Of a DNA stretch of 64,000 bases, positions 591 through 64,000 are shown one piece after another. The notes below the pieces were generated by a model. That model saw nothing but the letters and a program-made list of their open reading frames with translations. It was not told the DNA's origin and searched no databases. The stretch lies in NCBI GenBank assembly GCA_030704615.1, contig CM060731.1:70928001-70992000 (forward strand), given 5' to 3'. Position 1 is the first letter of the stretch; the number at the start of each line of letters is the position of its first letter. Source of the DNA: Takakia lepidozioides. Lineage: Eukaryota > Plantae > Bryophyta. The position numbers were made by a program, and so were the translations under genes.

Positions 591-965
591 TTATTTCTGA
601 GCGAGGAATTACCTTCGTGCAGGTAATTCCCATATAAGAATTACCTTCGTGCAGGTAATTCGCATACAAGAATTACCTTTGTGCAGGTAATTTCCAGATG
701 ACAATTACCTTCCTGCAGGTAATTCCAATCGATGTTTATTCCTCGTCCAGAATTACCTGCACAAAGGTAATTCTCATCTGGAAATTACCTGCATGAAGGT
801 AATTCTTGTATGTGAATTACCTGCACGAAGGTAATTCTTATATGGGAATTACCTGCACGGAGGTAATTCCTCGCTCAGAAATAAATGGCGAATCGAAATT
901 CGGCGCCGAATATCCATATGGCACCGATCCGACTTACCTGCAGGATGGAAATTCGGCGCCGAATT
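507..965. repeat. Large inverted repeat (dyad) centred at ~737, with arms of ~220 bp and a 24-bp spacer; inner part has 8 palindromic GAATTACCT-N6-AGGTAATTC sites
   Basis: Sites start at 606, 638, 670, 702 and at 750, 782, 814, 846; spacer 726-749. The mirror-image ORF translations 283..669(-) and 806..1060(+) confirm the inversion. Confidence 0.95.
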
Positions 966-2245: not shown

Positions 2246-2468
2246 GGGAAATTCCGGGACTGTTTTCGTCTATTTTCTTCCGACATGGAGGGCTTCATCC
2301 GACATTTAATTGCGCAGTTGGGCAATAAATGTCGACGGCCGTCGCTTATTATTCGGGCTGGCGACGCATGGCTTCCTGGACACGTACCCTAAATCTCATG
2401 CTATACTTGGCTTAACATGGTATTCCAGGCATGTACCCCAAAAAAGGAGATCTTTTTGGCTGGGACTT

Positions 2469-5400
2469 ATGCCGCCTGAAGGGCGTGGCTCTCCTGAGAG
2501 AGACCTCAGATCCAGACCGCGGCGGAAGTTGAAAGCTCTGTACTACGGACGACGGCCAATCTCTCGCATGGCCAAACTGAAGCTCCAGCAGGAGATTCCA
2601 GTGTCTTGCTCACAACCTGCGCCAACTGAAGCCGAGTACTCTCAGGCAAGCCACTTCTGCTTTCGGTTTGTTCGATTTCTTTTTTGCTTTCGCTTCGTTA
2701 CCTCGCTTTGTTTCTGCATCTTCATCCTGGCTTTGCTTTATGAGTGAACTTTAGATAGTTGACTGAACCTTAGATTGTTTGCAATGCGTGTGCAAATCCG
2801 GCAGCTCTGGAGAAGGCTGCTTGTGCATGTCATTCTTAGGCAATGGTTGCATTTGTTTTCATTGTTGTTGCATGGCTCTCCATACTTCCTAAACTTGTTA
2901 TGTTTTCATTTTTGCTACATGATTGCTGCTATGGTGGTTGCGCTGCTGCTTTTTGCACCACTGTTGGTGTTCACGATTTTTGTCAATCACAGAGTGACGA
3001 CGAGCCCGGCACGCTGGTGGTATCATCGACAGCTCCAACTCATCGCATGTTTGAATCGCCCAACTTGGGGCGAGAGGGCAAACTTAAATCTTTTGTTGGT
3101 GGACGGGAGGACTTGCAACGAGATTACGATAGAGTAGGCATTGGGGAGGTTGGTGCAGGCGGCATGGCAGGTGAAGGGCGTGAGGACATGAGGACAGCAG
3201 ATCCGGCAATGGAGGTTGTTCATGCACATGCAGTAGGGCCCGCCCACGCAAAGAAAAAGAAGAAAGCTAAGCACATGCAATCCCCGGCGAGAGAGCAGTC
3301 ACGGGCTGCGGAGGGGGGAGTGAGCAGTGCGCGCGAGGGTGTCAGTTCGCCTCAATCAAAGGTGGTCGTCCTGGAGGGCTCCCCTGTTGCTAGCCCTAGT
3401 AAGAAACAGAAAGCCCGTGAGAGGGCAAAAGAGAGGGCAAAAGAACAGACGAGACAGAATGCTAGCAAGGAGGAAAGACAAAAGGCAGCTGAAGAGGCCC
3501 GGGTGCCCAAATGACAGATGCCAATGTAAGCGAGGGACACACAGAGACGGTGGATCCCTACAAGACACCACAGAGAGGCAGTAGCACACCGGTTAGACCA
3601 TCGCGGGCAAGTGCAGCCCCCGCAATTACCCATACGGTGGAGAGTGGAGGAGAGGAAAGAACACCTGAAAGAGCACCGATTGTGCAAGTTCGAGGTGAAG
3701 CCAGGGAGAGGGCAGTAGAGACGACGAGAGTGCTGGAGGTGGTTTCGCAGGTGGCTGACCCTGTTGAGGAGGACGACATGGATGTTTCTGACCAGGATGA
3801 CATTCTCCCGGACATCCCCAGGCCCCAAACCCGGAGCATACAGGCTGGATTTGGCGGTCTTGGTGGGCTGCCGGAAAACCCCTCTGCAGCAGACGTCATG
3901 TCTGAGGCGGATATGAAGTTGGCCGCTGCCAAGATGTTGGAGGCAACCCACAGCAACATTGGCAGGGTGCTGGGGGGCATGGTGTACCCGGCCAAGCTTC
4001 GAATTCCCCTTTGCCGCTTGGTGTCATTGCAGGTGGTGAGACCTGCCCTCCCAGGCGATATCGACAAGCTGAAATTCTCTTTCCGGGATGGATATCGAAT
4101 GGGGTCTGCCGCCTTTTACGTTTCCATTGAGAACGACCACGGAGCTTCCCGTGCCCACACTTCCGATGAGGTGGACAAATGGGGTCCCCATTGGCAAACG
4201 CGAAATGAGGAGTTCGAGAGATCGATTGCTAGTGATCCTCTTTTCCAGCACATGTCCGGTAAGATGTTCTACGTGTGGGACGGCAATCATCGCCTCCTGG
4301 CATGGATGGAGCACATTGCCCAAGCCCACCCCAACGATCTCGATTGGCATTTCGCCGTCGATTGTGTTGTGCTGAAGGTTGCGGGGCCCAAAGATCGCAG
4401 TCTTCTCAAAGCTGCAATGGCCGACATCAACTCGTAAGCTACAACCCCTCTCGCTTTTGGACTTTGAATTTGGAAGTCATTTCATTGCGAATCCTCATAT
4501 ATGATGAAAATTCCCATTTCAGTATTGTTTGATGGAAATGTGGCACTGCAGGGTGACTGAGAATGCCTTCATTGCCACCAACTTGTCCCATATGCTCTTC
4601 CGAGTGAAGGATGTCGGGAGGCAGGGGGTGGAAGAGTTTGCCAATTCCCTCAGTGCCGACCTCCTGCGCAAGTCGGAGGCAAAGGCAGACAGAACCTGGT
4701 ATAGGCTGAGCGTCGACGCCATGGTGGACTACATATTTCGGGTAAAGCTCCTGCAGTTTTGTTGAGCTAATTTGTCTCTCCTCCCCCAATAGAAGAAATT
4801 GTGTTGAGCAGGATCTCTAATCTTATGTGCTGCTTTTCGACAGACGAAAATACAGCAGGATTTGGCACATGCGCGGAGGTTCTACATGGAGTCAGAGGAG
4901 AAGAATCCAACCCTCCCGGAACTCGAATCGTATGTCAAAGCTGCGGAGGTGAGGGCCCGCATAAAGTACAAGTCGCGGATGGTAAAGTACGTGGCCATAG
5001 CTGATCCCGCCCTTGGTGCCGACTTTCTGGTGGAGGTGGGAAAGCACTACTCTCGCGCTCTGAAGCCCACGATGACATTGGAGAAGCTCCATCGTCTAGC
5101 CACATCCTGTGTGGATGCAACAGAAAAGGTGATACATTCTTAACCAAATTGTGGTGGCAACAACTCCTTTTTGTGGTGTTTGGCGCTTACGAATATGCTG
5201 GGTGGTTGGACAGACCCGGTGGCTCCAAATCTGGAATGGTTCCCAAAGTACCAGGGACATGTGGAGCTTCCCCAAACCGGACAAACTCTCTGACCCCACA
5301 TTCGACATGTGGATGAACCGCATGACATGGTGGTTTCAGGTACTTCCCCACGCTTCGTTTGGGGCTTGTACTCTAGTAGGGGGTTGATTCATTGTATTTT

Positions 5401-8400
5401 TTGAGGAAAGCGATCTGATGGACAATCTCCACAGGTGACGACGAATGCGCAAGAGCAGCTGGACACACAAGCACATCAGTTCAAGATGGAGATATCTCCT
5501 GCAGCAGAGAGCCTGCGTGACTATGTGACGAGGTACTTTCTGCTCTACAAAACCAACCTATTCTTTCGGGAGATAGCAGATGCTCGCCGGAGCCACGAGT
5601 TCACCGACCAGCCGAACGCGGACAAAGCAGCAATGCGCCTTCTGTACAGGTACATACGCGCTGCCTTTCTTTCAAGTCCTGGCATTTCAGGATGTTAGAG
5701 GCCTAAGTGGTGTTAGGGAAAATGGCGCCGAATTTCCAGTCAGGGCTCCGAAAATGGCAAAGTCCCTAGACTGGCTGGCCCGGAACTGGAAATTCGGCGC
5801 CATTTTCCAGTTCCAGGCCCTATTGCCGTTCAGGGACTTAGCCATTTTCGGGCTAAGTCCCTAGTGTGGCTGGCCCGGAACTGGAAATTCGGCGCCGTTT
5901 TCCAGTTCTAGGCCCTATTGCCGTCCAGGGACTTAGCCATTTTCGGGCTAAGTCCCTAGACTGGCTGGCCATGAAGTGGAAATTCGGCGCCATATTCCAG
6001 TTCCAGGCCCTATTGCCGTCCAGGGACTTAGCCATTTTCGGTCTAAGTCCCTAGGGTGGCTGGCCCGGAACTGGAAATTCGGCGCCGTATTCCAGTTCTA
6101 GGCCCTATTGCCGTCCAGGGACTTAGCCATTTTCCGGCTAAGTCCCTAGACTGGCTGGCCCTGAAGTGGAAATTCGGCGCCATATTCCAGTTCCAGGCCT
6201 ATTGCCGTCCAGGGACTTAGCCATTTTAGGTCTAAGTCCCTAGGGTGGCTGGCCCGGAACTGGAAATTCGGCGCCGTATTCCAGTTCTAGGCCCTATTGC
6301 CGTCCAGGGACTTAGCCATTTTCGGGCCAAGTCCCTAGACTGGCTGGCCCTGAAGTGGAAATTCGGCGCCATATTCCAGTTCCAGGCCCTATTGCCGTCC
6401 AGGGACTTAGCCATTTTCGGTCTAAGTCCCTAGGGTGGCTGGCCCGGAACTGGAAATTCGGCGCCGTATTCCAGTTCTAGGCCCTATTGCCGTCCAGGGA
6501 CTTAGCCATTTTTTGTGTAAGTCCCTAGGGTGGCTGGCCCGGAAGTGGAAATTCGGCGCCGTTTTCCAGTTCCAGGCCGTATTGCCGTCCAGGGACTTAG
6601 CCATTTTCGGGCTAAGTCCCTACACTGGGTGGCCCTGAAGTGGAAATTCGGCGCCATATTCCGTTGTAGGCCCTATTGCCGTTCAGGGAGTTAGCCATTT
6701 TCGGACCTCATTGGGTTTTTCATGAATGCAGGTACTGTAAGTTCTCGCTTTTGGAGAAAGGTCATCTGTCTTTCGAGCCACCATTCTTCCTGGCATGGAG
6801 GAACCCTGGGGCTGACTCCATGTACACTGACGATATTGTGAAGGAGTGGCATCTGGAACATTTGCGTGATTGCCCTTGGTATGTGGACCTTCCGCCCGGC
6901 TCGCTCGACCCATCCGAGTTTCAATTGAAGCTGGATGCTGAATTCCGACGAAACCGGGCTCCGCTGCCTCCGTTGGGTGCAAAAGAGGCAAAAGCGCTTG
7001 CGAACTCCAGGAAAGCGGCAGAGCTTGCTCAGGCAGGAATTCAAGAGAAATTGCATGAGAAGAGTAAAGGTCAAAGGAAAAGGACAAGGAAACAGGTGAC
7101 TGCAGTAACACCCAAAAAGAAGAAAACCATCGGGGCATCGGAGGAGGCGCAGGAGGGGACCCAAGAGAGTGACTCCGACGCCGATTTTGTTCAAGGTCCT
7201 GCGACTGCTGTTGCTCCTACCCAGTCACCGGTCGTCCGGGTTCCCAAGTCAGTTCGGAGTGGGACTGGCTCTGCCAAGAAGTTGGCATTTGAGGGCGAGC
7301 CTACACGGCGGTATTCGGCGGTGACGTTTACGCACAGGCCAAAGCTAGAACCTCCAACCATCATCCAATGCGTCAATGAGAGCTTCCTTGACGCTCTCGC
7401 TGCCAGGGCGAAGAAGGTGGCACACAACAAGTCTCTGGCGGAGCAGAAGGGAAAAGCCAAGAAGAGGGCTGCCGGTACAGAGCCTAAAGACACCCCTGGT
7501 TTTGAAGCCATGATGGAATTCTTCACGGCTGTGAGCACGAATTGCAAGAGCACTCGGGGGGGGTTGAGGTGGAGAGAGCTTGCGACATGATTCTCCTCGA
7601 CATTCCAGATGGGGAGCTGCTGGAGGGCCTGGATGGTGTGCCCACCTGGAACAGGTTTACTGAGGACTACTGGAAAGCCGGGTTTGGGCTGGCGGGGATG
7701 CTTCTGGATGACGGTGGATGTGTGGTTGTCCTTGCCACGAGAGGGAAGACCACAGAGAATGCGGTGGCAAGGTGGACACCGAAAAGTGTCACCCCGGTCC
7801 TCCTCAGAAAATGGTTCTGCATCAGTACGCAGGGGTTGCGAACAGAGGGCCAAAGTGTAAGTTATCAATCTATTGCATTCACTTCATATTGTGGTGTATG
7901 TTAAGTAGACCCTGGAATTGATCCCTTCTTTGTTGGATGTGCAGACATTGGTGTTTGAGGCATATTGCTTTGTGAAGAGAGGGTCTACGTTCAAATTCCG
8001 CAACGACGGTCGTCTTGTTGATGCCGCTGTGGACCCTGTAACCTACGATGTCCTCTACAACTATGTGCCCCACTCTAGTATGCCGAAGGACACAAAGACA
8101 GGCAAACCGTGGCGGTACAGCCGGACCCGAAGCCCTGCTTTCATCCAAACCCTCATGGAGACGTGCTCGGATGTCCAAGGGCGGATTCTGGACCTCACAT
8201 GCGGCACGGGTAAGCCTTCACGTGCTCAGTTTGTCCCCTGGCCCCATTGCAATTGCATGCCGCAAGCTATTAACCGCCCGCTTTGTTCCTCAGGTGCTTC
8301 AATGTGGGCAGGGACGTTGTCCGACAGGCATGTGTTCGCCTTCGAGCCAGATACTGCCCTCCACAACTCGGAACTTGCAGCGGCTGAACGTCTGCCGAAA

Positions 8401-9081
8401 GAGGAAGAGGCATCCTCGGAGGATGAGGAAAAATCCGAGAAGGAGCAGGGGGAGGAAGTTGGGATCGAGGCCGAGGAGCCCCCGGTTTACGAGTGAGTGG
8501 TGGCATTGTAAGTTGCCTCCAGATTTTGTGAGGCACCTCCCTCCGCTCTCTTATTTCATTGAAAACCCTTTCTGGTTGTGCTGGTATTGACATTCTTCAA
8601 GTGGATTTGTTCTTACTGTAGGATGCCAAGTACTGCCGGAGGGACGTCTACACCGGAGTTCATGGGCAGGAGGAACGTGCCTTTTTTTGCCAGGGGAGAT
8701 TTCATGCCTAGTCCAGAAAGGGAGTACATCCTGCCTACTTATGCTGCCCGGCTTGCTTCGGTGTCCATTAGGAGGTGTTCCGAACGTAGTCGTGTACAGC
8801 AGATTTTAGACGAGGCAAGCCTCAAGAAAATGAAGATGAGGGAGGAGGCAGCAGCTATTAGAGCCCGTCGGGCTCGTAGATTTGTGTTGGATTCTGCTGA
8901 GGAAAGTGGGGGAGAAGACGCAGAAGATTCCCAGGAGGTGAGGTGGACAGTCCCCCAAGGAGAGGACGGGATTTTTGAGAGGCATAGTGGAACTGATGCA
9001 TCACAGAGCTCGGAGGATGAGGGGGATGAGGGGGATGAGGAAGAAGGTGGGGCAAGTTCCTCGGAGGGTGTAGGAGAGTAG
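2469..9081 (+). CDS. Multi-exon gene, ~1,490 aa: disordered N-terminus + ParB/Srx-like N-terminal domain + helical region + beta-class N6A/N4C DNA methyltransferase-like domain + acidic tail
   Basis: Predicted exons: 2469-2645 (GC donor), 2993-4433, 4552-4741, 4844-5128, 5214-5339, 5435-5649, 6732-7856, 7945-8209, 8294-8492, 8622-9081. All splice phases are compatible. The model needs one extra base at each of two homopolymers (AAA ~3510, G8 7556-7563). Motifs: IPLCRL..VVRP..IDKLKFSF..G..FYVWDGNHRLLA (DGNHR 4279-4293); motif IV-like MILLDIPDG (DIPDG 7599-7613); RSPAFIQTLMETCS; motif I ILDLTCGT|GASMWAGTLSDRHVFAFEPD, which is only assembled by splicing intron 8210-8293. The 5' exon is the least certain. 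Confidence 0.85.
5720..6705. repeat. Intronic tandem array, 95-bp period (190-bp dimer), ~10 units, each with two hairpins: GGAACTGGAAATTCGGCGCC..TTCCAGTTCC and AGGGACTTAGCC-N7-GGCTAAGTCCCT
   Basis: Unit anchors at 5766, 5861, 5956, 6051, 6146, 6240, 6335, 6430, 6525 and 6620; lies inside predicted intron 5650-6731. Confidence 0.95.
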
Positions 9082-9564
9082 TGCCCATTCCGGCTATGAC
9101 AGTTAGAACACACTTGTATAGACGTGGCTTGCCACAAAATTTGCAATAAAATGTTGCATTTTAAGTCCACTGGTGCCACATTCCAACTTCACATGACCCT
9201 ATTTCCGTGCCTCCTAACCCTATTTCCGTGGACTCACAATGGTCTGCTCATGCTTTTTTTTTTTCCGCTCATGCTCATGCCGCTCATGCTCATGCCGCTC
9301 ATGAAATAGCAGCCCCCCTGAAGAAGACGACCACCAGTTCGCCCACTTGTGGCCAGCATCTCCTCCGCTTCACACTAGAAGCCCAAACTTGGTTGCCATA
9401 GCGTTGAGCTATGCAACGCCGCTCTTCAACATAGGCTACCCACCTCTCTATCCATGGCAAACCTGCAACCTGTTCGCCTTTGCACTCTTCCGCTTTGGAT
9501 AGGCTCATGCACGGCTCCCTGCACTCTAGGTTGAACTGCTTCTCACTCAAAGTTCACTCAAGAA

Positions 9565-10477
9565 GCTAACTTGCAGAATTCAACATGGAAGAAGAAAGAT
9601 TCTGATAAGAGGAAAAAACAAGGTGAAATGTATTGAAGAAGGTTCCCTCATTAGCAGTGTCCGATTTTATCAATTGTGGCGCCGCTGCTGGCACTGTGGC
9701 TTTCAGTTGACAATCTACCCATGCAGGTTTCTTGTAGCTATCCTTCCACAAGGAATCATAGGTAATGTGAAGCTTGAAATGCGGCCCTCTTGGATGAATC
9801 TGGACCCACACTCTATCCTTGCTCCTTCAGCTATCCATGCCTATGCACAAATCATGCATACATCCTTGCCTTGCTGCTAGCAGCTGACAATGACAGCCTA
9901 CATCTATTCTAGGAAACACCCTAACTCAACTTATCACTCTAGTTCATATGCTCAATTGCATCTGCTACTTTTTGTAATCCAACAGGCATTCACCTTTTTG
10001 CTCGATTGTCCCACCGTTGACTGGGTCAGAAAAGTATTCATTCCACAGCTTTTCCTCGTCTCTGTTACCTGTTTCTGGATACTTATCCTGTTGTCACATT
10101 GGCAGTATCATGTCAAAGTCACTCCAAACTATTTAAGGTTCACTCAACCAGCTAACTTGCAAAATTCAACATTTAGGGCCGATTCTGATAAGAGGGAAAA
10201 ACAGGGTGAAACGTGTTGAAGAAGGTGCCTTCATGAGCAGTGCCTGATTTTATCAATCGTGCCGATGCTGCTGCGGCTTCCAGTTGACCATCTACCCATG
10301 CAGGTTTCTTGTAGTTATCTTTCCACAGGGAGTCATAGGTGATCTGAAGCTTGAAATCCGGCCCTCTTGGATGAATCTGGACCCACACTCCATCCTTGCT
10401 CCTTCAGCTATCCATGCCTCTGCACAAATCATGCATACATCATTGTCTTGTTGCTAATAACTGACAATGACAGCCTA
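9565..10477. repeat. Direct duplication of ~330 bp (9565-9900 and 10151-10477)
   Basis: GCTAACTTGCA...CTGACAATGACAGCCTA occurs twice; the minus-strand ORF translations are near-identical. Confidence 0.85.
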
Positions 10478-10626: not shown

Positions 10627-11451
10627 CTATGCTGCGTAGACCCCACTATCATTTCCCGTGGATATGCCAAAACCAATGGCCAGCTTCTCATTGTGGTGGC
10701 AAAGAGAAAATTCATTTTCCTCCTCCCCCACATCATGCAATACAAAGTGTCTGTCAGGCACATACCCCGCCTCCTTCATCTTCCCAGACAATCTTCTCAA
10801 CTCAGCATGGATTTCCTTAATTCTGGGATGCAACTTGTCATCTACAGCAAAGTGTGCACCCTGTTGCCAACCTCAATGCAGCAGCGACCTGGCTCCTTTC
10901 TAACCCCTCTGACCTTCATCATTCTTCTCACCTTTGCAGTATTATCCCACTTGCCAGCTGCAGCATACATGTTTCAGAGCAACACATGAGGATAGATGTT
11001 GCTGCACGTTCAACCATCTCCACATTGCCATGGATTCTGCAGGCACCAAGCAAAGCTTTCCACACCACAGCACCTGGATTTATGGGCATTTTATTGATCA
11101 GATTCACTGCCTCATCTGGTTGTCCCGCACGTCTAAGAAGGTCCACCATGCAGCCAAAGTGCTTTACTGTCGGAGTGACACCATGATCTTGACTCAGGGA
11201 ATCAAAGTAGTGTCTTCCTTCATTCAGTAGGCCAGCGTGGCTGCATGCAGAGAGAACACATATAAAGGTGATATTGCTCGGCTTCAAGCCGTTCTTTTGC
11301 ATTTCTTCAAATAGTTGCACGACCTCCCTATGACAACCATGATGTGCATATCATGTCATCGCATTCCACGACACCACATCTCATTCAGCCATGTTGTCAA
11401 ACACTCCCTTTGCATCCTCCATGCACCCACATTTGGCATACATGTCCACCA
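10627..11451 (-). pseudogene. PLS-class PPR E/DYW pseudogene fragment
   Basis: ITFICVLSACSHAGLLNEG..HFGCMVDLL..VWKALLGACRIHG; HPRIKEIHAEL..GYVPD..CHHNEKLAIGFG. Frameshifted, DYW C-terminus missing, 5' part cut by a LINE. Confidence 0.9.
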
Positions 11452-13523: not shown

Positions 13524-16400
13524 ATGAGATGCCTATTACGCCTGCCCAACCTCCAGGAAAACGGAAGAAAGGTATGTCCATGCAACTCTCTATATCAGTT
13601 TCTGTTCTCCAGCGCAAAGTTTTGTAATACACGTGTTGAGTCTTGCAGGATGGCAGGCTTGAATCAGGCACAGTTGTTTGTTGGACTTAAGACTGGCAGC
13701 CGGGGTACCCGCACAAGCATCACTTCTTTTCAAAAAGGATCAGGAGTGGGGGTCAACAAGGACTCATCGCGCACTTGTGGGGATGTGCGCACACTATCTA
13801 AGGCAGGGCGACTCGAAGAGGCGCTGCACCTTTTGAACCAACCAGGCATTCAGGCCGACTCGACTGCTTACGTCTGCATTTTGCAGGAGTGCACCATCAA
13901 AAGAAGCCTAGCAGAAGGAAAGCAGGTGCATGCCCACATTGTGCAATGTGGATTCAAATCAGACATCTTTCTACTCAACACCCTTGTCAACGTGTATGGC
14001 AAGTGCGGAAGTGTGGTAGATGCACACAAAGTGTTCGACGAAATGCCTAAACGAGACATGTTTACCTGGAACATAATGATATCAGGATATGCCAAGCATG
14101 GGTATGGTAGGGAGGCATTGGAGATCTATGAGGAAATGCAACAGGAAGGGGTTATTCCCAATAGGGTCACGTTCATTTCTGTTCTGAATGCGTGTGCCAG
14201 CCTAGGAGACCTGGGAAAGGGAGGAGAGGTACATGTTGACTTCATCAAGACTGGAGTTGCACCTGATGTCATCCTGGAGACTGCACTTGCTGATATGTAT
14301 GGGAAATGCGGGAGTTTGAAGGATGCACGACAAGTGTTTGATACTATGGCTAAGCGAAATGTGGTCTCATGGAATGCAATGATTACAGGATATTCTCAGC
14401 ATGGGTGTGGCTGGGAGGCTTTCGAGATCTACAAGCAGATGCAGCAGGAAGGGGTGACGCCCAACAGGATAACATTTATCTGCATTCTCAAAGCGTGTGC
14501 CAGCCTGGGAGATGTGGGGAAGGGCAAAGAGGTCCATGCTGACATCAAGAAAGCTAGGATAGCACGGGATATCATTCTGGACACTGCGCTTGCTGACATG
14601 TATGCGAAATGTGGGAGCATGAAGGACGCGCATCAAGTATTTGACAGTATGATTGGACGGAATGTGGTCTCTTGGAATGCCCTGATTACAGGATATGCTC
14701 AGCATGGGTGTTATAAGGAGGCTTTGGAGACCTATGGCCAAATGCGTCGAGAAGGGGTGATTCCTGACCTTGTCACTTGCATTTGTGTTCTCAATGTGTG
14801 TGCCAGCCTTGGAAACCTGGAAAAGGGCAAAGAGGTCCATGCTGATATAAGGGAGACTGAATTGGTGCCCAATATTAATTTGGAGAATAGCCTCATTAAC
14901 ATGTACGCCAAATGTGGGAGTGTGATGGATGCACGTAGAGTGTTCGAGAACATGTATGAACGAGACGTGGTCACATGGACTGCACTGATCAATGCTGAGT
15001 GTGGTAGGGAGGCTTTGAAGCTCTATGAGGAAATGCAACAGGAGGGGGTGATTCCCAATAGGGTCACATTCATTTGTGTCCTCAACGCATGTGCCAGTCT
15101 ACGGGACCTGGAAAAAGGCAAAGAGGTCCATTGTGACATAATGAAAGCTAGCACTGCGATAAATATTAATGTTGAAAACAGCCTTATTAATATGTATGCC
15201 AAGTGTGGGAGTGTCAAGAATGCACGTGAAGTGTTTGAGAGAATGCCCGAACGAGATGTTGTCTCATGGACTGTGATGATCGATGCTGAGTGCGATGCTG
15301 AGTGTGCTAGGGAGGCTTTCAAGCTCTATGATCAAATGCAACAGGAAGGGGTGATTCCCAACATGATCACGTTCGTTTGTGTTCTCAATGCATGTGCTGG
15401 CCTTGGAGACCTGGAAAAGGGAAAAGCGGTCCATTGTGACATCATGAAATCTGAAATTGTGCCAAATATTAATTTGGAGAATTGCCTTGTTAACATGTAT
15501 GCCAAATGTGGGAGCATCGTGGATGCACGGCAAGTCTTTGAAAATATGGCCGAACGAGACGTGGTTTCCTGGACTGCGATGATCGATGCTGAGTGTGGTT
15601 GGGAGGCGTTGGAAATCTATGGGCAAATGCAGCGGAAAGGGGTGAGACCCAACATGGTCACATTCATTTGCGTTCTCAATGCATGTGTCATTCTCGGAGC
15701 CCTAGAAAATGGCAGAGAGGTCCATGAGGACATCATCAAAGCTGGAATCGCATCACACATTAATTTAGATAATAGCCTTGTTAACATGTATGCCAAATGT
15801 GGGAGCGTGAAAGATGCACGTCAAGTGTTTGACAGTATGGCTGAACGAGACGTGGTCTCATGGACTGCGATCATTGCAGCTTATTCTCAACATGGTTGTG
15901 GTAGGGAGGCCCTGCAACTATTTGCACAAATGCAACAGGAAGGGTTCAAGCCAAATGGCATTACCTTTATATCTGTTCTCTCTGCATGTAGTCACGGGGG
16001 CCTAGTGGATGAAGGTTGCCACTACTTTGATTCCATGGATCGTGATCATGCCCTCACACCTACATTGGAGCATTTTGGGTGCATGGTGGACCTTCTTGGC
16101 CGTGCAGGGCGATTGGAGAGGGCAGAGGATATTATTCAGAATATGCCAGTCCATGCAGATAGGTCAGTGTGGGGGGCTTTGCTTGGCGCCTGTAGGATTC
16201 ATGGCGAGTTGCAGGTAGCAGAACGTGCTGCAATAGGCCTTCTCAAGTTGGATCCCCAGCATGCGGCACCATATGTGCTGCTATCAAACATCTATGCTGC
16301 AGCTGGTCGGTGGGATGATAAAGCAAAGGTGAGGAAAATGATGGTGGACAGAGGTCTCAGAAAGGAGCCAGGGCATAGCTCCATTGAGGTTGACAACTAG
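13524..16400 (+). CDS. PLS-class pentatricopeptide repeat protein with E1/E2 domains (organellar RNA-editing factor family); E+/DYW truncated
   Basis: Seven P-L-S triplets (each with YAKCG or YGKCG), then P2-L2-S2 and E domains ending KEPGHSSIEVDN*. The in-frame E+ start MHTFVVEGKVHPH follows the TAG. True start is uncertain (in-frame ATG at 13650). Confidence 0.93.
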   Translation: MRCLLRLPNLQENGRKVCPCNSLYQFLFSSAKFCNTRVESCRMAGLNQAQLFVGLKTGSRGTRTSITSFQKGSGVGVNKDSSRTCGDVRTLSKAGRLEEALHLLNQPGIQADSTAYVCILQECTIKRSLAEGKQVHAHIVQCGFKSDIFLLNTLVNVYGKCGSVVDAHKVFDEMPKRDMFTWNIMISGYAKHGYGREALEIYEEMQQEGVIPNRVTFISVLNACASLGDLGKGGEVHVDFIKTGVAPDVILETALADMYGKCGSLKDARQVFDTMAKRNVVSWNAMITGYSQHGCGWEAFEIYKQMQQEGVTPNRITFICILKACASLGDVGKGKEVHADIKKARIARDIILDTALADMYAKCGSMKDAHQVFDSMIGRNVVSWNALITGYAQHGCYKEALETYGQMRREGVIPDLVTCICVLNVCASLGNLEKGKEVHADIRETELVPNINLENSLINMYAKCGSVMDARRVFENMYERDVVTWTALINAECGREALKLYEEMQQEGVIPNRVTFICVLNACASLRDLEKGKEVHCDIMKASTAININVENSLINMYAKCGSVKNAREVFERMPERDVVSWTVMIDAECDAECAREAFKLYDQMQQEGVIPNMITFVCVLNACAGLGDLEKGKAVHCDIMKSEIVPNINLENCLVNMYAKCGSIVDARQVFENMAERDVVSWTAMIDAECGWEALEIYGQMQRKGVRPNMVTFICVLNACVILGALENGREVHEDIIKAGIASHINLDNSLVNMYAKCGSVKDARQVFDSMAERDVVSWTAIIAAYSQHGCGREALQLFAQMQQEGFKPNGITFISVLSACSHGGLVDEGCHYFDSMDRDHALTPTLEHFGCMVDLLGRAGRLERAEDIIQNMPVHADRSVWGALLGACRIHGELQVAERAAIGLLKLDPQHAAPYVLLSNIYAAAGRWDDKAKVRKMMVDRGLRKEPGHSSIEVDN

Positions 16401-16434
16401 ATGCATACCTTCGTTGTGGAAGGCAAAGTGCATC

Positions 16435-16590
16435 CACATGATCTTGACTCATGGGATCAAAGTAGTGATGGCCCTCATCCACCAGGCCCAAATGTTTACA
16501 GGCAAACACAAGACATACATAGGTGCTACAGTCCGGCTTCAAGTTCAGAAGGTCCACCATGTAGTCAAAATGCTCCACTCTAGGAGTGAG
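16435..16590 (-). pseudogene. Short inverted, rearranged PPR fragment
   Basis: Minus-strand VEHFDYMVDLL..TYVCLVFACKHLGLVDEGHHYFDPMSQDH. Confidence 0.75.
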
Positions 16591-16594
16591 GAGT

Positions 16595-17970
16595 GAGGGC
16601 ATCAAGGATGGCCGTAAAGTGTTCGACAACATGGCACAACGTGATGTGGTCTCATGGAACACAATGATTGCAGGATATGCCCAGTGTGGGTGTAGCAGGG
16701 AGGCTTTCAAGAAGTATAAGCAAATGACACGGGAATGGGTAGCACCTGACAAGGCCTCATTCATTTGTGTGCTCAATGTGTGGCAGCCTAGGAGCCCTGA
16801 AGAAGGCAAAGAAGTCCATGCTGACATCATCAAAGCTGGGATTGCATCATTCATAAGTTTGGAGAATGCCCTTGTCAATATGTATGCCAAATGTGGGAGT
16901 GTAAATGATGTGGGTGAAGTTTTTGACAACATGGCTCAATGAGACGTGGTCTCATGGAGTGCAATGATTGCAGGATATGCTCAGCAGGGATGTGGTAGGC
17001 TTGCTTTTGGGACGAATGAGCAAATGATATGAAAGGGGTACCACCCAACAAGGTGACATTTATTTGCGTTGTCAATGCATATGCCGTCCTCGGAGCCCTA
17101 GAAAAAGGCAAAGAAGTTCATGCTGACATCAGCAAGGCTTGAATTGTGTCGTATATTTTGAAGAATACCCTGGTTGACATGTATGCCAAACGTGAGAGTG
17201 TGAAGGATGCACGTCAAGTGTTTGATAGTATGGCTCATTGAAATGTAGTCTCATGAACTATGATTGTGGGATATGGTCAGCATGGGTGTGGTAAGGAGGT
17301 GCTCCAATTATTTGAACAAAGGCGACTGGTGTAGGCCGATTGGATGTGGCAGAGGACTTTAGCAAAATACCAATCGAGCCAGGTGCTTCAGTGTGGGCAC
17401 CCTGCTTGGTGCCTGCAGATTTCATGGGAATGTGGAGGTAGCAGAACGTGTAGTGAATTGCCTTCTTAAGGTGGATTCACAGGATGCTGGAATTTTTTGT
17501 GCTGCTATCAAATATCTATGCTGCTGCTGGTAGAGTGGGATGACCAAGCAAAGATGAGAAATCTGATGCAGGACAGGTGTCAAAAAAGAGCCAGGATGCA
17601 GCTCCATTGAGGTGGATAACGGGGTGCACATTTGTTGTAGAAGACAAATTGCATCCCCATATGGAGGAAATCCATACTTAGCTGAAGAGATTGTCTGGGC
17701 TAATGAAAGACGCCGGGTATGCGCCTGACACATGCTTCATGTGGAGGAGAGGAATTCTCTTTGCTACCGCAGTGAGAAGCTGCCCATTGCCTTTGGGCTT
17801 ATCAGGACTGCCCCTGGGAGACCTCCTCTTGTCATTAAAAACCTTCGCATGTGTGGTGACTGCCGCATAATCACGAAGTTCATATGATACTGGGCGAGCA
17901 ATTGTTGTACGGAATGCCAACCGCTTTCACCAATTCTAAGATGGGGTTTATTCTGTGACGATTACTGCTG
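16595..17970 (+). pseudogene. PLS-E-DYW PPR pseudogene
   Basis: PLS repeats with stops and frameshifts, E domain, GYAPD, SEKL, IKNLRMCGDC, ANRFHQF and a degenerate DY* end at ~17970. Confidence 0.9.
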
Positions 17971-25408: not shown

Positions 25409-28400
25409 GGTTATGGGCTCTTGTGCTATCCTGTAAGCTGCGCCTCCGTGTGTGTCGGAGTATATTGGTTTTCTTGCCGGACTTTTAGTATTAGCCCAGT
25501 ACATAGTAGTCTGTTTCTCTACATTCTTTGTTTTCCCTCTTTTTTAGTATATCTCGTGTGTGTCAGTTCTTGGTATCTGCCATGGCAGAGACTAGCCATG
25601 AGCATCTAGGTTACATATCTAGGTTCAAGGGGTCCAACTTTCACCTCTGGAAGTTTCAGATGAGAGCCATACTTCTTGGAAAAGACTTGATGGAAGTAGT
25701 AGATGGGACAGAGGCAAAACCTGCTGAAACAGCAACCGGAGAGGAGAAAGTAGCTTGGAAGAAGAGGGATAATGCTGCCTACAGTCTTTTGACACAGGCG
25801 CTTGATGAGGTGGTCTTGCCATACATTATGAGTTGTGTGACATCAAAGCAAGTCTGGGATACGCTCAAATTGTATCACGAACAGAATGCTTCCGAGAATG
25901 CTCACACGCTCCAACAAGACTTCTATAAGTGCGTGATGGTCGATGAGGAGACTGTTGCGAGTTTTCTTGGCCGCTTACAGCTCATAGTCCAGCAGTTAAC
26001 AAGTCGTGGAGATACGACGTTCAATGAGCAAGAGGTGATATCCAAGATCCTATGCAATCTTCCTGGAGGGTTCGATACTCTCATACCTGCATGGAGAATG
26101 CAGGCGGCAAAGAGCAAGACTCTTGCAAACTTAACTCTGCAGCTTCTTCAGACAGAAGGGATGCTCAAGAGTCGTGCGGATGCGAGCGTAGCAACAGCAG
26201 CGGCTTATTTGGCATCATCTACAAGAGGCAAGAAGCCATCGGACTATACCCTTGAAGAACGTGCGGCAAGACGCAAGGAGATTGATTCAGGTAGCAAGAA
26301 CAAGCCATTGGGGTTCAAGGCCTATATGGCAAGTGACTCAAGTTTTAGCTCCAGTAGAGTGCGTGAGTCCACTTTTTGGTATGTCGACAGTGGGTGTACT
26401 GAACATATGACGGACAATCGATCTTTCTTCTCGACTTACAAAGACATCTCGATGGAGAATCGCCCAGTAGAAGGTATCGGTGGGGTGATGCTCCAAGCTG
26501 TTGGAGTCGGGGACATTATAATCAAGATCAAGCATGCTGACGGGTTTACCTATGGAGTGCTAAAAGGTGTAGTGCATGTTCCAAATCTTGGCCGGAATTT
26601 ATTTTCGTCATATGTTGCAGCACAGCAAAAGCATTATACTCTACACATGGACATTGAATGTCATTTGCTGGAGGAAGGGAAGGTTGTGATGACTGGAGTA
26701 GTTCACAACAGGATGTGTTGAATGCAGTTTGAAGCTATCCCACCTGAGGACACCCTCTCTGCGATGTCCGCCAGCACAGTTGGTGCACCGACAGTCGCAC
26801 AATGCAAGCAGTCGCTTGAACTTTGGCATCAGAGGTTCTCACACACCAACCATGCGACAATACAGATGATGGCATCGCAGGAACTGGTTGAAGGATTGTT
26901 GTTCACCAGTAAAAATCATCAGTTCTGCCCGGGATGTGCGTTTGGAAAACAACATCGAAACCCATTCCCAACCACTGAGCCCAGGCAATGGTCACAATTT
27001 CCAGGTGATCTTGTACACACAAATTTTTGTGGTCCTTTAAATGTAACATCAGTGGGAGGGGCTCTGTATATTTGTTTGTTCAAGGATGACTCATCCGGGT
27101 TCAGAGTAATTGAGTGTCTGAAGACTAAGCCAGAAACTCTTGCTGCATTCAAGCGGTTTGTGGCTCAGCTCAAACGTGAGACAGGCAACTCAGTGAAGAT
27201 CCTCAGAAGTGATCGTGGTACAGAGTACACAAATGGAGCCTTCATGAGATACTTGGATGAACAGCAAATCAAGCAAGATCTCACCATCGCGTTCACGCCA
27301 GAACAGAATGGCTCCTCGGATCGGGAGAATAGAACGATTATTGAGGCTGTAAGAACCATGTTACATGCGGCACATGTACACATTAGGTTTTGGGCCGAAG
27401 CAGCTCACACAGCAGTATACACGTTGAATCGAACAGTGTCAAGAACGACATCTGGGAAAACACCGTATGAGGAATGGTATAAGCTCAAACCGTTAGTAGC
27501 ACATCTCAGAGCATTTGGCTCGGATGCATATGTGCACATCCCTAAAGCGCTCAGAAAGAAACTCTCGGCAAAGAGTAGAAAGGGTGTTTTCATGGGCTAC
27601 TCCGCCACAAGTAAAGGATATCGAGTGTGGATCAATGAACTGCGTCGTATTGAAGAAAGCAGGGATGTTCTCTTTGATGAGAACTTCAGTGAAGCCGATC
27701 TCAGCGGGAACCAATCTGATCCCATGCCATGGCTTCGAGTTGAGGGCGACCCAGTACCAGTTTTCGCACCAATTATTCCACCAGCACCACTGGCAGCACC
27801 CATACCGCACCAAGACGTTGTTAGTAGCCCACTTGTAATCAGCTTCCCCAATAGTGGCTCTAGGGATCCCGCAGACATGGACACCAATGATCCAGAAGAC
27901 GATCAGTTCATAGATCAGCGTCTGGATGACGAGATGCGGGATGTTGAAGCATTAGCAGCAGCTTCGAGTGGACATGACCTGTGGGAGAACATGGGGGCCC
28001 AAGACGAACTCATGGCAGAGGTCCAACAAGTTAACGCGGATCAGCAGGAACCAGCCCTTGGAGCCAGACAACGGAATCCACCTGAAAACGAGACGTGGGC
28101 CATCGAAGATCTACCAGCAGGCCGGAAAACAATCAAATGCAAATGGGTGTTTAAGTTAAAGCTCTGATGGATCAGTACACCGTTACAAGGCACGGCTTTG
28201 TGCAAAAGGCTTCACCCAACGAGCGGGAGTGGACTATAAAGAAACGTTTAGCCCGGTTGTCAAGATGGACTCTATCCGCACAATCTTATCCATAGTGGCT
28301 GCAAAGGATTTGAACATCCAACAATTTGACGTCCGCACAGCGTTTTTGTATGGTGAACTTGATGAAACAATCTACATAGAACAGCCCGTCGGGTTTGGAG

Positions 28401-28843: not shown

Positions 28844-28898
<55 letters not shown>

Positions 28899-45247: not shown

Positions 45248-48222
45248 GGTTATGGGCTCTTGTGTTATCCTGTAAGTTGCGCCTCCGTGTGTGTCGGAGT
45301 ATATTGGTTTTCTTGCCGGACTTTTAGTATTAGACCAGTATACAGTAGTCTATTTCTCTACATTCTTTGTTTTCCCTCTTTTTTAGTATATCTCGTGTGT
45401 GTCAGTTCTTGGTATCTGCCATGGCAGAGACTAGCCGTGAGCATCTAGGTTACATATCTAGGTTCAAGGGGTCCAACTTTCACCTCTGGAAGTTTCAGAT
45501 GAGAGCCATACTTCTTGGAAAAGACTTGATGGAAGTAGTAGATGGGACAGAGGCAAAACCTGCTGAAACAGCAACCGGAGAGGAGAAAGTAGCTTGGAAG
45601 AAGAGGGATAATGTTGCCTACAGTCTTTTGACACAGGCGCTTGATGAGGTGGTCTTGCCATACATTATGAGTTGTGTGACATCAAAGCAAGTCTGGGATA
45701 TGCTCAAACTGTATCACGAACAGAATGCTTCCGAGAATGTTCACACGCTCCAGCAAGACTTCTATGAGTGCGTGATGGTCGATGAGGAGACTGTTGCCAG
45801 TTTTCTTGGCCGCTTACAGCTCATAGTCCAACAGTTAGCAAGTCGTGGAGATACGACGTTCAATGAGCAAGCGGTGATATCCAAGATCCTATGCAATCTT
45901 CCTAGAGGGTTCGATACTCTCATACCTGCATGGAGAATGCAAGCGGCAGAGAGCAAGACTCTTGCAAACTTGACTCTGCAGCTTCTTCAGACAGAAAGGA
46001 TGCTCAAGAGTCGTGCGGATGCGAGCGTAGCAATAGCAGCGGCTTATTTGGCATCATCTACAAGAGGCAAGAAGCCATCAGACTATCCCTTTGAAGAACG
46101 TGCGGCAAGACGCAAGGAGATTGATGATCGGAAGAAGAACACCGATTGCTGGAAGTGCGGTCATCCTGGCCATCGGGGTCGTGAGTGCATGGCATCAGAA
46201 GAAGACCAACAGATTTTCCAAGAGTCACAAAATGCCAAGAAACGAGCTACCAAGATGGATTCAGGTAGCAAGAACAAGCCATTGGGGTTCAAGGCCTATA
46301 TGGCAAGTGACTCAAGTTTCAGCTCCAGTAGAGCGCGTGAGTCCACTTTCTGGTATGTCGACAGTGGGTGTACTGAACATATGACGGACAATGGATATTT
46401 CTTCGCAACTTACAAAGACATCTCGATGGAGAATCGCCCAGTAGAAGGTATCGGTGGGGTGATGCTCCAAGCTGTTGGAGTCGGGGACATTATAATCAAG
46501 ATCAAGCATGCTGACGGGTTTACCTATGGAGTGCTAAAAGGTGTAGTGCATGTTCCAAATCTTGGCCGGAATTTATTTTCGTCATATGTTGCAGCACAGC
46601 GGAAGCATTATACTCTACACATGGACACTGAATGTCATTTGCTAGAGGAAGGGAAGGTTGTGATGACTGGAGTAGTTCACAACAGGATGTATCGAATGCA
46701 GTTTGAAGCTATCCCACCTAAGGACACCCTCTCTGCGATGTCCGCCAGCACAGTTGGTGCACCGACAGTCGCACAATGCAAGCAGTCGCTTGAACTTTCT
46801 CACACACCAACCATGCGACGATATAGATGATGGCATCGCAAGAACTGGTGGAAGGATTGTTGCTCACCAGTAAAAATCATCGGTTCTGCCCGGGATGTGC
46901 GTTGGGAAAACAACATCGAAACCCATTCCCAACCACTGAGCCCAGGCAATGGTCACAATTTCCAGGCGATCTTGTACACACAAATTTTTGTGGTCCTTTA
47001 AATGTAACATCAGTGGGAGGGGCTCTGTATATTTGTTTGTTCAAGGATGACTCATCTGGGTTCAGAGTAATTGAGTGTCTGAAGACTAAGGCAGAAACTC
47101 TTGCTGCATTCAAGCGGTTTGTGGCTCAGCTCAAACGTGAGACAGGCAACTCAGTGAAGATCCTCAGAAGTGATCGTGGTACAGAGTACACGAATGAAGC
47201 CTTCATGAGATGCTTGGATGAACAGCAGATCAAGCAAGATCTCACCATCGCGTTCATGCCAGAACAGAATGGTTCCTCGGAATGGGAGAACAGAACGATT
47301 ATTGAGGCTGTAAGAACCATGTTACATGCGGCACATGTACACATTAGGTTTTGGGCCGAAGCACTATGTGAAGAACCCTGCTCCTCCATTGCAGTGGTTG
47401 CTCCTCAAACACTCCCATCTCCTTACATTCTCGCGCATCAAGTATGCGTGAGTGTTAGAGGACTGTTTGGGACTTAGACGCTTTTACGGGATCTGTGGGG
47501 TACCCTTAATTTTTACACAGACTGAGACCAACATGAGCCTTAGGGGTGACAGCAACAGGCTTTAGGGGGAGAGAGATCACACACAGCCGTCACAGCCCAA
47601 CACAAGCCAGTCACAGCTTCGCACAGCCGACACAGCCCAACACAGCCAACACAGCCAGTCACAGTCAACACAGCCCGTCACAGCCAATTGTCCGCGACCA
47701 CTCCGGGAACCACTTGGTAGTAAACAGGATTACTGGAGAGTCGAAACAGACAATGTGGGCCCACGGGGGCATTTCAGTCCATGAACCACTGCGCATTCAT
47801 TGCACCCATGACTCGGCAGCACATTTGCTGACGTGGCTTTCACAAAAAGAGGTAAACTAAATGTGGCCCTTGGGGGAAGAATAGATATTTTAATACGTGC
47901 TGCCTCCACTGGCAAGACAAGGATGCAAGTGCTGCGTCGGACATGGCGGGACGTGGGAATGGAAATCCAGACACGGCAAGGCCTTCGTATACTGTGACGC
48001 GCGTAGTGGCTTCTTCTCAGAACGGTGTGACATCGGGGTCTTGTCATTCATCATTTACAGAATGTGTTGGATGGAAGCACGATGGAGCGCGCATACGGGC
48101 ATGCCCTTCTGGCATCAATTCCCAAGTATCCACGCAAGGTGAGGCTGCTGAATTGGGTTTTTGCCCGTCTAGTTTTCTGACAGCATGCTCGAAACGTTCA
48201 TAGTGCCATTGAGTGCATCGCA

Positions 48223-62859: not shown

Positions 62860-64000
62860 AATGGAATGGTCATTGTGAAACTTACTGAGGTTTTCTTATT
62901 GAAGAAGAGGTGAAAAAAAAAGGCTGGGTGAGTCATCATGAATCTTATTTAGGGATTCTTGCATGAACAAGAGACAAGAAAAGTTTGGATGCTCATTGTC
63001 AAGCTATCTGACGTTTCCAGTATTTTATCCATGGTGGATGGATGATGGATGGATGACATATTGAAGGAGAGGTTAAAAATAATGAGGATGGGCAAGAACA
63101 GGCCCCAAAATATGACCCCTCATTGTGAAACAGGCAATGGTTTTTGTTAATGTAGATGAGGTGAAAATTAAACAGATGGTCATCTTCAAGCTTATTTAGG
63201 CTTTGTTTGTGAAGAAGATGTGTAACAAAATGAGCGGTTTATTGTGGAACTTGTTCAGGTTTGTGTTATTGAAGATGAGGTGAAAAAAAAACACATGGTC
63301 ATTGTGATTGCTTATTTAGGGTGTGTTTGTGAAGAAGAGGTAAAAAAAAACATTGAGCATCCTTGTGAAACTTGTTTAGGATTCTGTTATTGAAGAAGAG
63401 GTGAAAAAAAAAGTTAAGCTCTATCATTGTCAAACTTGTTCAGGTTTCTGTTATTGAAGAAGAGGTGAAAAAAGATTTCAGATGGTCATTATGAATGTTT
63501 ATTTAGGGTTTGTTTGTGAAGAAGAGGTGAAAAAAATATTAGATGGTCATCATGAATGCTTATTTAGGGTTTGTTTGTGAAGAAGAGGTGAAAAAAAAAG
63601 TTGAGCTCTATCATTGTCAAACTTCTTTAGGTTTCTGTTATTGAAGAAGAGGTGAAAAAAAAACCAGATGGTCATCATGAATGCTTATTTAGGGAATAAA
63701 TTAGGGATTGTTTGTGAAGAAGAGATGAAAAAAAACTTGAGCTCTACCATTGTCAAACTTCTTCAGGTTTCTGTTATTGAAGAAGAGGTGAAAAAAAACC
63801 AGATGGTCATCATGAATGCTTATTTAGGGTTTGTTTGTGAAGAAGAGGTGAAAAAAATTGTGCTCTATCATTGTCAATCTTGTTCAGGTTTCTGATGATG
63901 AAAAAGAGGTGAATAAAAAATCAGATGTCATCATGAATAAATTAGGGTTTGTTTGTGAAGAAGAGGTGAAAAAAAAACTTGAGCTCTATCATTGTCAAAC
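62860..64000. repeat. AT-rich satellite of ~57-62-bp monomers (two types, mostly alternating) anchored on GAAGAAGAGGTGAAAAAAA; runs off the window end
   Basis: Repeated GAAGAAGAGGTGAAAAAA followed by either CAGATGGTCATCATGAATGCTTATTTAGGGTTTGTTTGT or GTTGAGCTCTATCATTGTCAAACTT. Confidence 0.9.

Follow-up and report, generated by a model that had tools for sequence, protein, structure and literature searches.

The eight regularly spaced palindromic sites near the start of the 64-kb stretch of DNA analyzed here (the window) mark, in a judgment that we hold at slightly better than even, the center of an old fold-back duplication within a satellite of putative protein-binding palindromes, which lies upstream of an accessory gene of transposon type that encodes a ParB/Srx-fold domain. 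An earlier note on this DNA had described the sites as an origin- or centromere-like dyad. Rather than acting as an origin of replication or a centromere, they most likely arose as a side effect of how the repeats evolved, and it is improbable that the dyad as such constitutes a new functional element.

Eight copies of the 24-bp site GAATTACCT-N6-AGGTAATTC, each with 0 to 1 mismatch in a pattern search, are found where the earlier note had placed them: four make up the left-arm sites (606, 638, 670, and 702, spanning 606–725) and four the right-arm sites (750, 782, 814, and 846, spanning 750–869), the latter being mirror images of the former, with 8-bp linkers and, as for the other repeat features described below, no strand assigned. 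The exact 32-bp phase is recovered by TRF as two 32-bp arrays (606–726 and 750–869), and the N6 centers and 8-bp linkers do mirror each other between the two sets, unit by unit. At ≤2 mismatches, the site pattern matches 23 times in the window, compared with 0.01 matches expected from shuffles. The basic building block is an 8-mer half-site (GAATTACC or, as its complement, GGTAATTC) that recurs exactly every 16 bp between 606 and 862 and alternates in orientation; the phase that defines a 24-bp “site” is arbitrary, being one of two equally valid phases. The proposal that these sites line one face of the DNA survives in part, in that a 32-bp spacing is arithmetically ≈3 helical turns, but the half-sites inside a site are 16 bp or 1.5 turns apart and thus lie on opposite faces of the helix. 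Mirror-partner sites are 88 to 100% identical with linkers that are identical or nearly so, and units within one arm are ≈86% alike (TRF). The dyad is AT-richer (GC 0.39, CpG observed/expected 0.7–0.9) than the arrays that flank it (GC 0.50–0.59, CpG observed/expected 1.5–1.6). A metagenome scan with the 24-bp site returned 10 isolated single sites and zero arrays, which is at chance level by a rough estimate.

The symmetry extends well beyond these sites. An inverted-repeat search identifies a palindrome with arms of 219 nt at 507–725 and 750–968 that are 93% complementary and separated by 24 nt, with the left arm composed of one 106-type unit, a 36-bp leader, and the four 32-bp units. The arms have diverged by 7%, with 15 differences in 219 positions, 10 of which are transitions, mostly at CpG, a pattern that suggests that the region was methylated. 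Folded as single-stranded DNA, the palindrome is predicted to form one long hairpin (−242 kcal/mol, z = −44). Reading 507–968 as a MITE was considered and rejected, as no target-site duplication is recognizable in the sequence at 507/968 and the arm ends merge into arrays. A self-comparison of the 64-kb window revealed no other copies of the dyad or of the block within it. Between the arms, half-sites have changed at 1 of 72 positions and spacers at 6 of 48 (Fisher p = 0.016), a lower half-site divergence that could signal constraint; we do not take it as selection because the half-sites contain no CpG and most arm differences are CpG transitions, such that CpG decay explains the pattern.

The 24-bp core (726–749) consists of a linker, a degenerate half-site (734–741), and a second linker. 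It had been described as unique, and it is indeed nonpalindromic, with no internal symmetry found, but it is related to the array. The 16-bp lattice is held across the core, with the inner sites starting 48 = 3 × 16 bp apart, and the central 8-mer at 734–741 matches the half-site at six of eight positions; the joint probability of lattice fit and half-site-like 8-mer by chance is ≈5e-4. The core thus derives from the array and not from foreign DNA. Lattice positions just beyond the two sets of sites, at 590 and 878, are weakly half-site-like.

The dyad is embedded in two longer arrays built from the same half-site. The left outer arm (1–582) is a tandem array with a 106-bp period made up of two 53-bp modules, of which 5.5 copies are found in the window (TRF, 98% matches) before the array runs off the window start. 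Each 53-bp module harbors a 22-bp palindrome, GGAAATTC-GGCGCC-GAATTTCC, followed 8 bp on by a GGTAATTC-type half-site. The right outer arm (959–2254) is a tandem array of ≈9 copies with a 138-bp period and a higher-order period of 275 bp (TRF, 97–98%). Its unit comprises one diverged 32-bp module and two 53-bp modules (138 = 32 + 53 + 53), and the right array therefore contains nine more diverged 32-bp units. Internally, the flanking arrays are 97 to 98% homogeneous (TRF). The GGCGCC-centered palindrome dominates the flanks, with 31 copies in 1–2254 at ≤2 mismatches, and its arm differs from the dyad half-site by a single base; each unit of either flanking array also contains one pair of half-sites spaced 16 bp apart. 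The satellite can thus be described as one half-site (GGWAATTC) in two arrangements, a GGCGCC-centered 22-bp palindrome in the 53-bp module and a 16-bp-spaced pair in the 32-bp module, with the shortest-period repeats at the center of the block. Expressed in helical turns, the repeat periods (32, 53, 85, and 95 bp) are nearly integral. The 22-bp palindrome had no matches in the bacterial and archaeal genomes scanned. The elevated CpG observed/expected ratio of 1.5 to 1.6 is a property of the arrays at 1–582 and 997–2254, as compared to 0.45 to 0.6 in the remainder of the window; either these CpG-rich arrays arose very recently or they have been protected from CpG loss through methylation. The earlier note had held that the arms continue into different arrays, and the periods do differ (106 versus 138 bp), but the two arrays are homologous in inverted orientation, with an alignment score of 151 compared with 79 in forward orientation. 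The entire block is thus one diverged fold-back centered at 726–749.

The order of events can be read from the repeats themselves. The unit-specific spacers are mirrored between the arms, which means that the four-unit array predates the inverted duplication, and the ranking of similarities, from ≈86% among units within an arm to 88 to 100% between mirror partners and 97 to 98% in the flanks, places the array first, the inversion-duplication second, and the expansion of the flanks last. Any two neighboring sites are mutual inverted repeats, which makes this DNA ideally suited to fold-back priming once it is broken or to fork-associated template switching. Such events leave a short nonpalindromic spacer between the priming repeats (reviewed in PMC7999016), and the 24-nt core between two sites matches the expected spacer. 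Among the mirror pairs, the innermost sites show the lowest identity (88%), which fits a pre-existing priming pair, even as the difference from the other pairs is not significant. We infer the following sequence. A run of four 32-bp modules would have arisen and diverged, after which a break or a stalled fork in this self-complementary DNA would have allowed a 3′ end to fold back on the neighboring site, such that the array, the leader, and one 53/106-bp unit were copied in reverse and the loop was left behind as the 24-bp core. The 53-bp-based arrays on either side may then have expanded independently, or homogenized, to give the 106- and 138-bp periods. Inverted duplication of four units that already formed an array explains the dyad symmetry more simply than does an origin or partition design. 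The most likely role for the block as a whole would be to offer densely packed binding sites to a protein encoded by the element; within it, the dyad would have no separate role and its sites would be auxiliary at best because they are missing a conserved CG-N4-CG center (see below).

The repeat block ends at 2254, and ≈200 bp later a gene begins that reads away from the dyad center. The intervening spacer (2255–2469, plus strand), which extends from the repeat block to the first ATG of the gene and is not repeated elsewhere in the window, presumably contains the promoter and the 5′ leader. The gene is a multiexon gene of transposon-accessory type on the plus strand at 2470–9081, an approximate extent compiled from ORF pieces with exons unjoined. 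Its first conserved domain, in the exon part at ≈4003–4434 (plus strand), is a ParB/Srx-fold domain that harbors the motif WDGNHR and has 83 homologs of up to 50% identity on metagenome and eukaryote-like contigs. An AlphaFold2 (AF2) model of this domain built on the homolog alignment (A1) has a pLDDT of 82.8, and the top Foldseek matches to the model are all ParB, Noc, KorB, PadC, or sulfiredoxin (Srx), with a probability of up to 0.99 and E = 0.02. Comparison of the model with the Caulobacter ParB N-domain (residues 42–137) gives a VIA Z of 9.6 and an rmsd of 2.0 Å over 94 residues. These comparisons show that the domain, as modeled, folds like the ParB N-domain, a correspondence that covers the nucleotide-binding N-domain only. 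Pfam searches of seven exon pieces, taken singly, returned nothing relevant, nor did NCBIfam searches with alignment A1 or PDB profile and single-sequence searches for the ParB-like domain. The region past the N-domain is modeled with low confidence (pLDDT 38–77) in the homolog P0007:1–216, a stretch that takes in the counterpart of the following exon; no helix-turn-helix is callable after the N-domain in this model, and no part of the protein was identified as a sequence-specific DNA-binding domain. Farther downstream, the ORFs at 7542–7904 and 7918–8496 contain DIPD followed by DLTCGTG, a motif-level reading that points to a candidate methyltransferase-like part; these exons, searched one by one, gave no Pfam or PDB sequence match.

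Several additional features of the gene and its surroundings deserve mention. An intronic tandem array at 5756–6704 contains 10 copies of a 95-bp unit with a higher-order period of 474 bp, and this unit harbors two palindromes, a variant of the GGAAATTCGGCGCC palindrome that dominates the flanks and a separate GGGACTTAGCC...GGCTAAGTCCC. The ORF at 2843–3514 and the ParB-domain ORF at 3511–4437 share an ATGA overlap in different frames (window 3505–3515), which could reflect a short intron, a frameshift, or a true gene start at 3511. Just past the gene end, two 352-bp direct repeats (9549–9900 and 10135–10477) that are 86% identical and 234 bp apart may have arisen by local duplication or may belong to a small element with terminal repeats. 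The window comes from a plant-type nuclear genome, as it holds PPR genes and copia retrotransposons. An ORF at 13524–16400 encodes a 958-aa PPR protein with a 303-bp internal tandem period, and PPR pseudogene-like fragments are found nearby on the opposite strand (10928–11320 and 16357–16932, both minus). Copia-type gag-integrase stretches are located at 25528–28167 and 45367–47477, the first followed by a run of 53 G at 28844–28896, and an AT-rich tandem array with periods of 61, 121, and 187 bp (63139–64000) runs off the window end.

We also examined the loci around ten homologs of the gene (L001, L002, and L013–L022). Palindrome arrays adjoin or sit inside the ParB-like gene in relatives, and the palindromes themselves are lineage specific. 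The closest in design is that of L013, where a 96-bp array with twelve palindrome copies conserves the 8-6-8 design found here with a GGCGC center and ends at the ParB exon; in this locus, which comes from another sample, palindromes occur in two tiers, with three long copies 190 bp apart (7940–8360) upstream of the 96-bp array (8831–10010). L017/L018, L019–L021, L022, and L001 each have their own recurring palindrome, with differing arms and a CG-N4-CG center in all. This center is common to the palindromes of six relatives, whereas the dyad sites lack it in either phase. In L019–L021, the palindromes are perfect, 40 to 52 bp in length, have a GTCGGCAACGAC-type center, and lie upstream of the ParB ORF (e.g., L020, 1461–1512); these relatives occur in many moss-type metagenome contigs. 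The L017 palindromes are spaced by 427, 257, and 256 bp, which are not whole helical turns. A dyad comparable to the 4 + 4 sites was found in none of the ten relatives' loci scanned.

With these findings in hand, we see nothing to support reading the dyad as an origin of replication or a centromere: genes for an initiator or a partition ATPase are not seen, and an inverted duplication is the simpler account. Seven ORF pieces from 2.8 to 12.4 kb and the ten largest ORFs from 25 to 60 kb gave no match to a Rep-like or other initiator, and no ParA-type partition ATPase was noticed on reading the ORF lists of the window. As a candidate AT-rich unwinding element, the dyad is only mildly AT-richer than its surroundings (GC 0.39 versus 0.50–0.59). 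The idea of a parS-like array fares better, in that dense, phased palindromes do lie beside a ParB/Srx-fold gene, but the dyad sites do not share the CG-N4-CG center of the relatives' palindromes. A stronger proposal, that the 4 + 4 dyad was designed as the nucleation or pairing center of a transposon-encoded, eukaryotic ParB-like system akin to oriP or parC, strikes us as very unlikely, as does the corresponding scenario in which the protein would load there, bridge the arms, and mark or maintain element copies, be they extrachromosomal or integrated. The adjoining ParB-fold gene, the lower GC of the dyad relative to its CpG-rich flanks, the near-integral helical periods, and the better conservation of half-sites than of spacers all speak for such a design. 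The last of these is explained by the absence of CpG from the half-sites, however, and the helical phasing is not kept in L017; furthermore, only the ParB N-domain is seen in the protein, a partition ATPase was not noticed, the sites are without the CG-N4-CG center, and 0 of the ten relatives' loci scanned harbor a comparable dyad.

The earlier note had offered as an alternative a head-to-head junction of element termini, for which we see little probability. The two ends might belong to two elements, to one element with reversed ends, or to a fossil circle junction, and each arm would be a long terminal repeat with short-period binding sites beside the terminus and the downstream gene reading inward, as maize MuDR genes read inward from their terminal repeats. 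An arm of ≈219 nt at 93% does resemble the long terminal repeats of Mutator-type elements, the repeat period grows outward from the center, from 32 to 53/106/138 bp, and is shortest at the center as expected with two termini, and the gene starts ≈200 bp past the right-arm array and reads away from the center. Weighing against this reading, the core derives from the array (≈5e-4 by chance), as would not be expected of target DNA caught between two insertions; in addition, there is no recognizable target-site duplication at 507/968, and neither a transposase nor a matching inverted array or terminal repeat was found downstream or elsewhere in the 64-kb window. That the palindrome arises from an assembly artifact, either a fold-back chimeric read or a misjoin in repeat DNA, is barely credible. 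Highly repetitive and self-complementary regions such as this one are a known source of chimeric long reads, but artifactual fold-backs are expected to be perfect; the earlier note had discounted an artifact on the grounds that the arms differ at several positions, and the 15 differences in 219 positions and the arrays of different period into which the arms lead strengthen that argument. Finally, a hairpin-RNA locus, in which a transcribed inverted duplication would give rise to dsRNA and small RNAs that silence the element family, is quite unlikely in our estimation. The predicted hairpin is near-perfect (−242 kcal/mol, z = −44), the CpG transitions between arms suggest past methylation, and the inverted duplication involves the 5′ region of a transposon gene, as in Mu killer (PMC3440606), but what has been duplicated is noncoding repeat DNA. 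Rfam gave only miRNA-hairpin matches that are below threshold (38 bits against a gathering score of 83) and that we attribute to generic hairpin similarity.

Clustered, phased palindromes or iterons beside the gene of the protein that binds them are a hallmark of ParB–parS, R1 parC, F sopC, and EBV oriP, and R1 parC and EBV oriP, the latter with its family of repeats plus dyad symmetry, further exhibit a two-part, dyad-like layout. The present locus differs from these plasmid and viral partition and origin sites in the 1.5-turn spacing of its half-sites, and from the bacterial and viral systems generally in its setting on a nuclear, plant-type chromosome with no ParA, Rep, or EBNA1 equivalent seen. 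Bacterial parS is read by a helix-turn-helix domain; here, the dyad sites are unlike parS and no helix-turn-helix was found in the low-confidence model. The Foldback (FB) transposons of Drosophila offer a second structural parallel, with kilobase-long inverted arms of tandem subrepeats and a short, nonrepeated center. Long inverted arms of tandem subrepeats around a short center are likewise found here, but FB elements have their simple short repeats at the outer termini, whereas here these are at the center; moreover, the right arm adjoins a gene instead of target DNA, and the outer left end lies beyond the window.

Closer in presumed origin are the large palindromes generated by fold-back priming at short inverted repeats in Tetrahymena rDNA, yeast, and CHO cells (reviewed in PMC7999016), with which the palindrome described here has in common an inverted duplication around a short nonpalindromic spacer that is flanked by short inverted repeats. 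Those cases reach chromosome-scale palindromes or amplification, while here the duplicated stretch spans only ≈220 bp up to the point where the arms part, and a divergence of 7% marks the event as old. Our locus also resembles Mu killer of maize, which arose naturally by inverted duplication of a Mutator-type element's terminal or 5′ portion; Mu killer duplicates transposase coding sequence and is transcribed (PMC3440606), unlike the present locus, in which only noncoding repeats are duplicated.

The pairing of a ParB-like gene with its own palindrome arrays as a means of transposon self-recognition or modification was proposed only recently, in algae, and the locus described here bears on that proposal in several ways. 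Its anatomy is unusually clear, with one 8-mer half-site in two spacings, 32- and 53-bp modules, and an event order that can be reconstructed; the GGCGCC-centered palindrome and the 16-bp-spaced half-site pair provide clean probes for a first binding test; and the dyad exemplifies how self-complementary satellites may give rise to fold-backs of higher order that one could wrongly take for origins. In the literature searched, we found no description of a ParB-like accessory gene with palindrome arrays in land plants. The features of the algal module that are present here are an N-terminal ParB/Srx fold and palindrome arrays, at 1–2254 and 5756–6704. Sola1-1_Ec32 of Ectocarpus encodes a transposon protein with a ParB-like and an N4C/N6A methyltransferase part, for which self-binding and modification are proposed (PMC12477816, which cites green-algal cases from Iyer, Abhiman and Aravind 2011). 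The protein encoded here is likewise of transposon type and starts with a ParB-like domain, but its methyltransferase part is a motif-level reading with no Pfam or PDB match, and the palindrome arrays found here have no reported counterpart in the passage of that article consulted (PMC12477816). A further parallel is PAG3, an accessory gene of the red-algal Plavaka elements that is adjoined by tandem inverted-repeat arrays and encodes a ParB-like domain at its N terminus; the authors propose that its product binds the transposon that carries it and modifies that DNA (Petroll et al. 2025, bioRxiv 10.1101/2025.02.11.637652). In PAG3, the partner domain is a 2OG oxygenase, the carrier is a Plavaka element, and the arrays are not described as forming a higher-order dyad or fold-back, in contrast to the fold-back present here in a land-plant-type genome with PPR genes. 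The design as such is already published for algae, and this locus adds a land-plant-type example.
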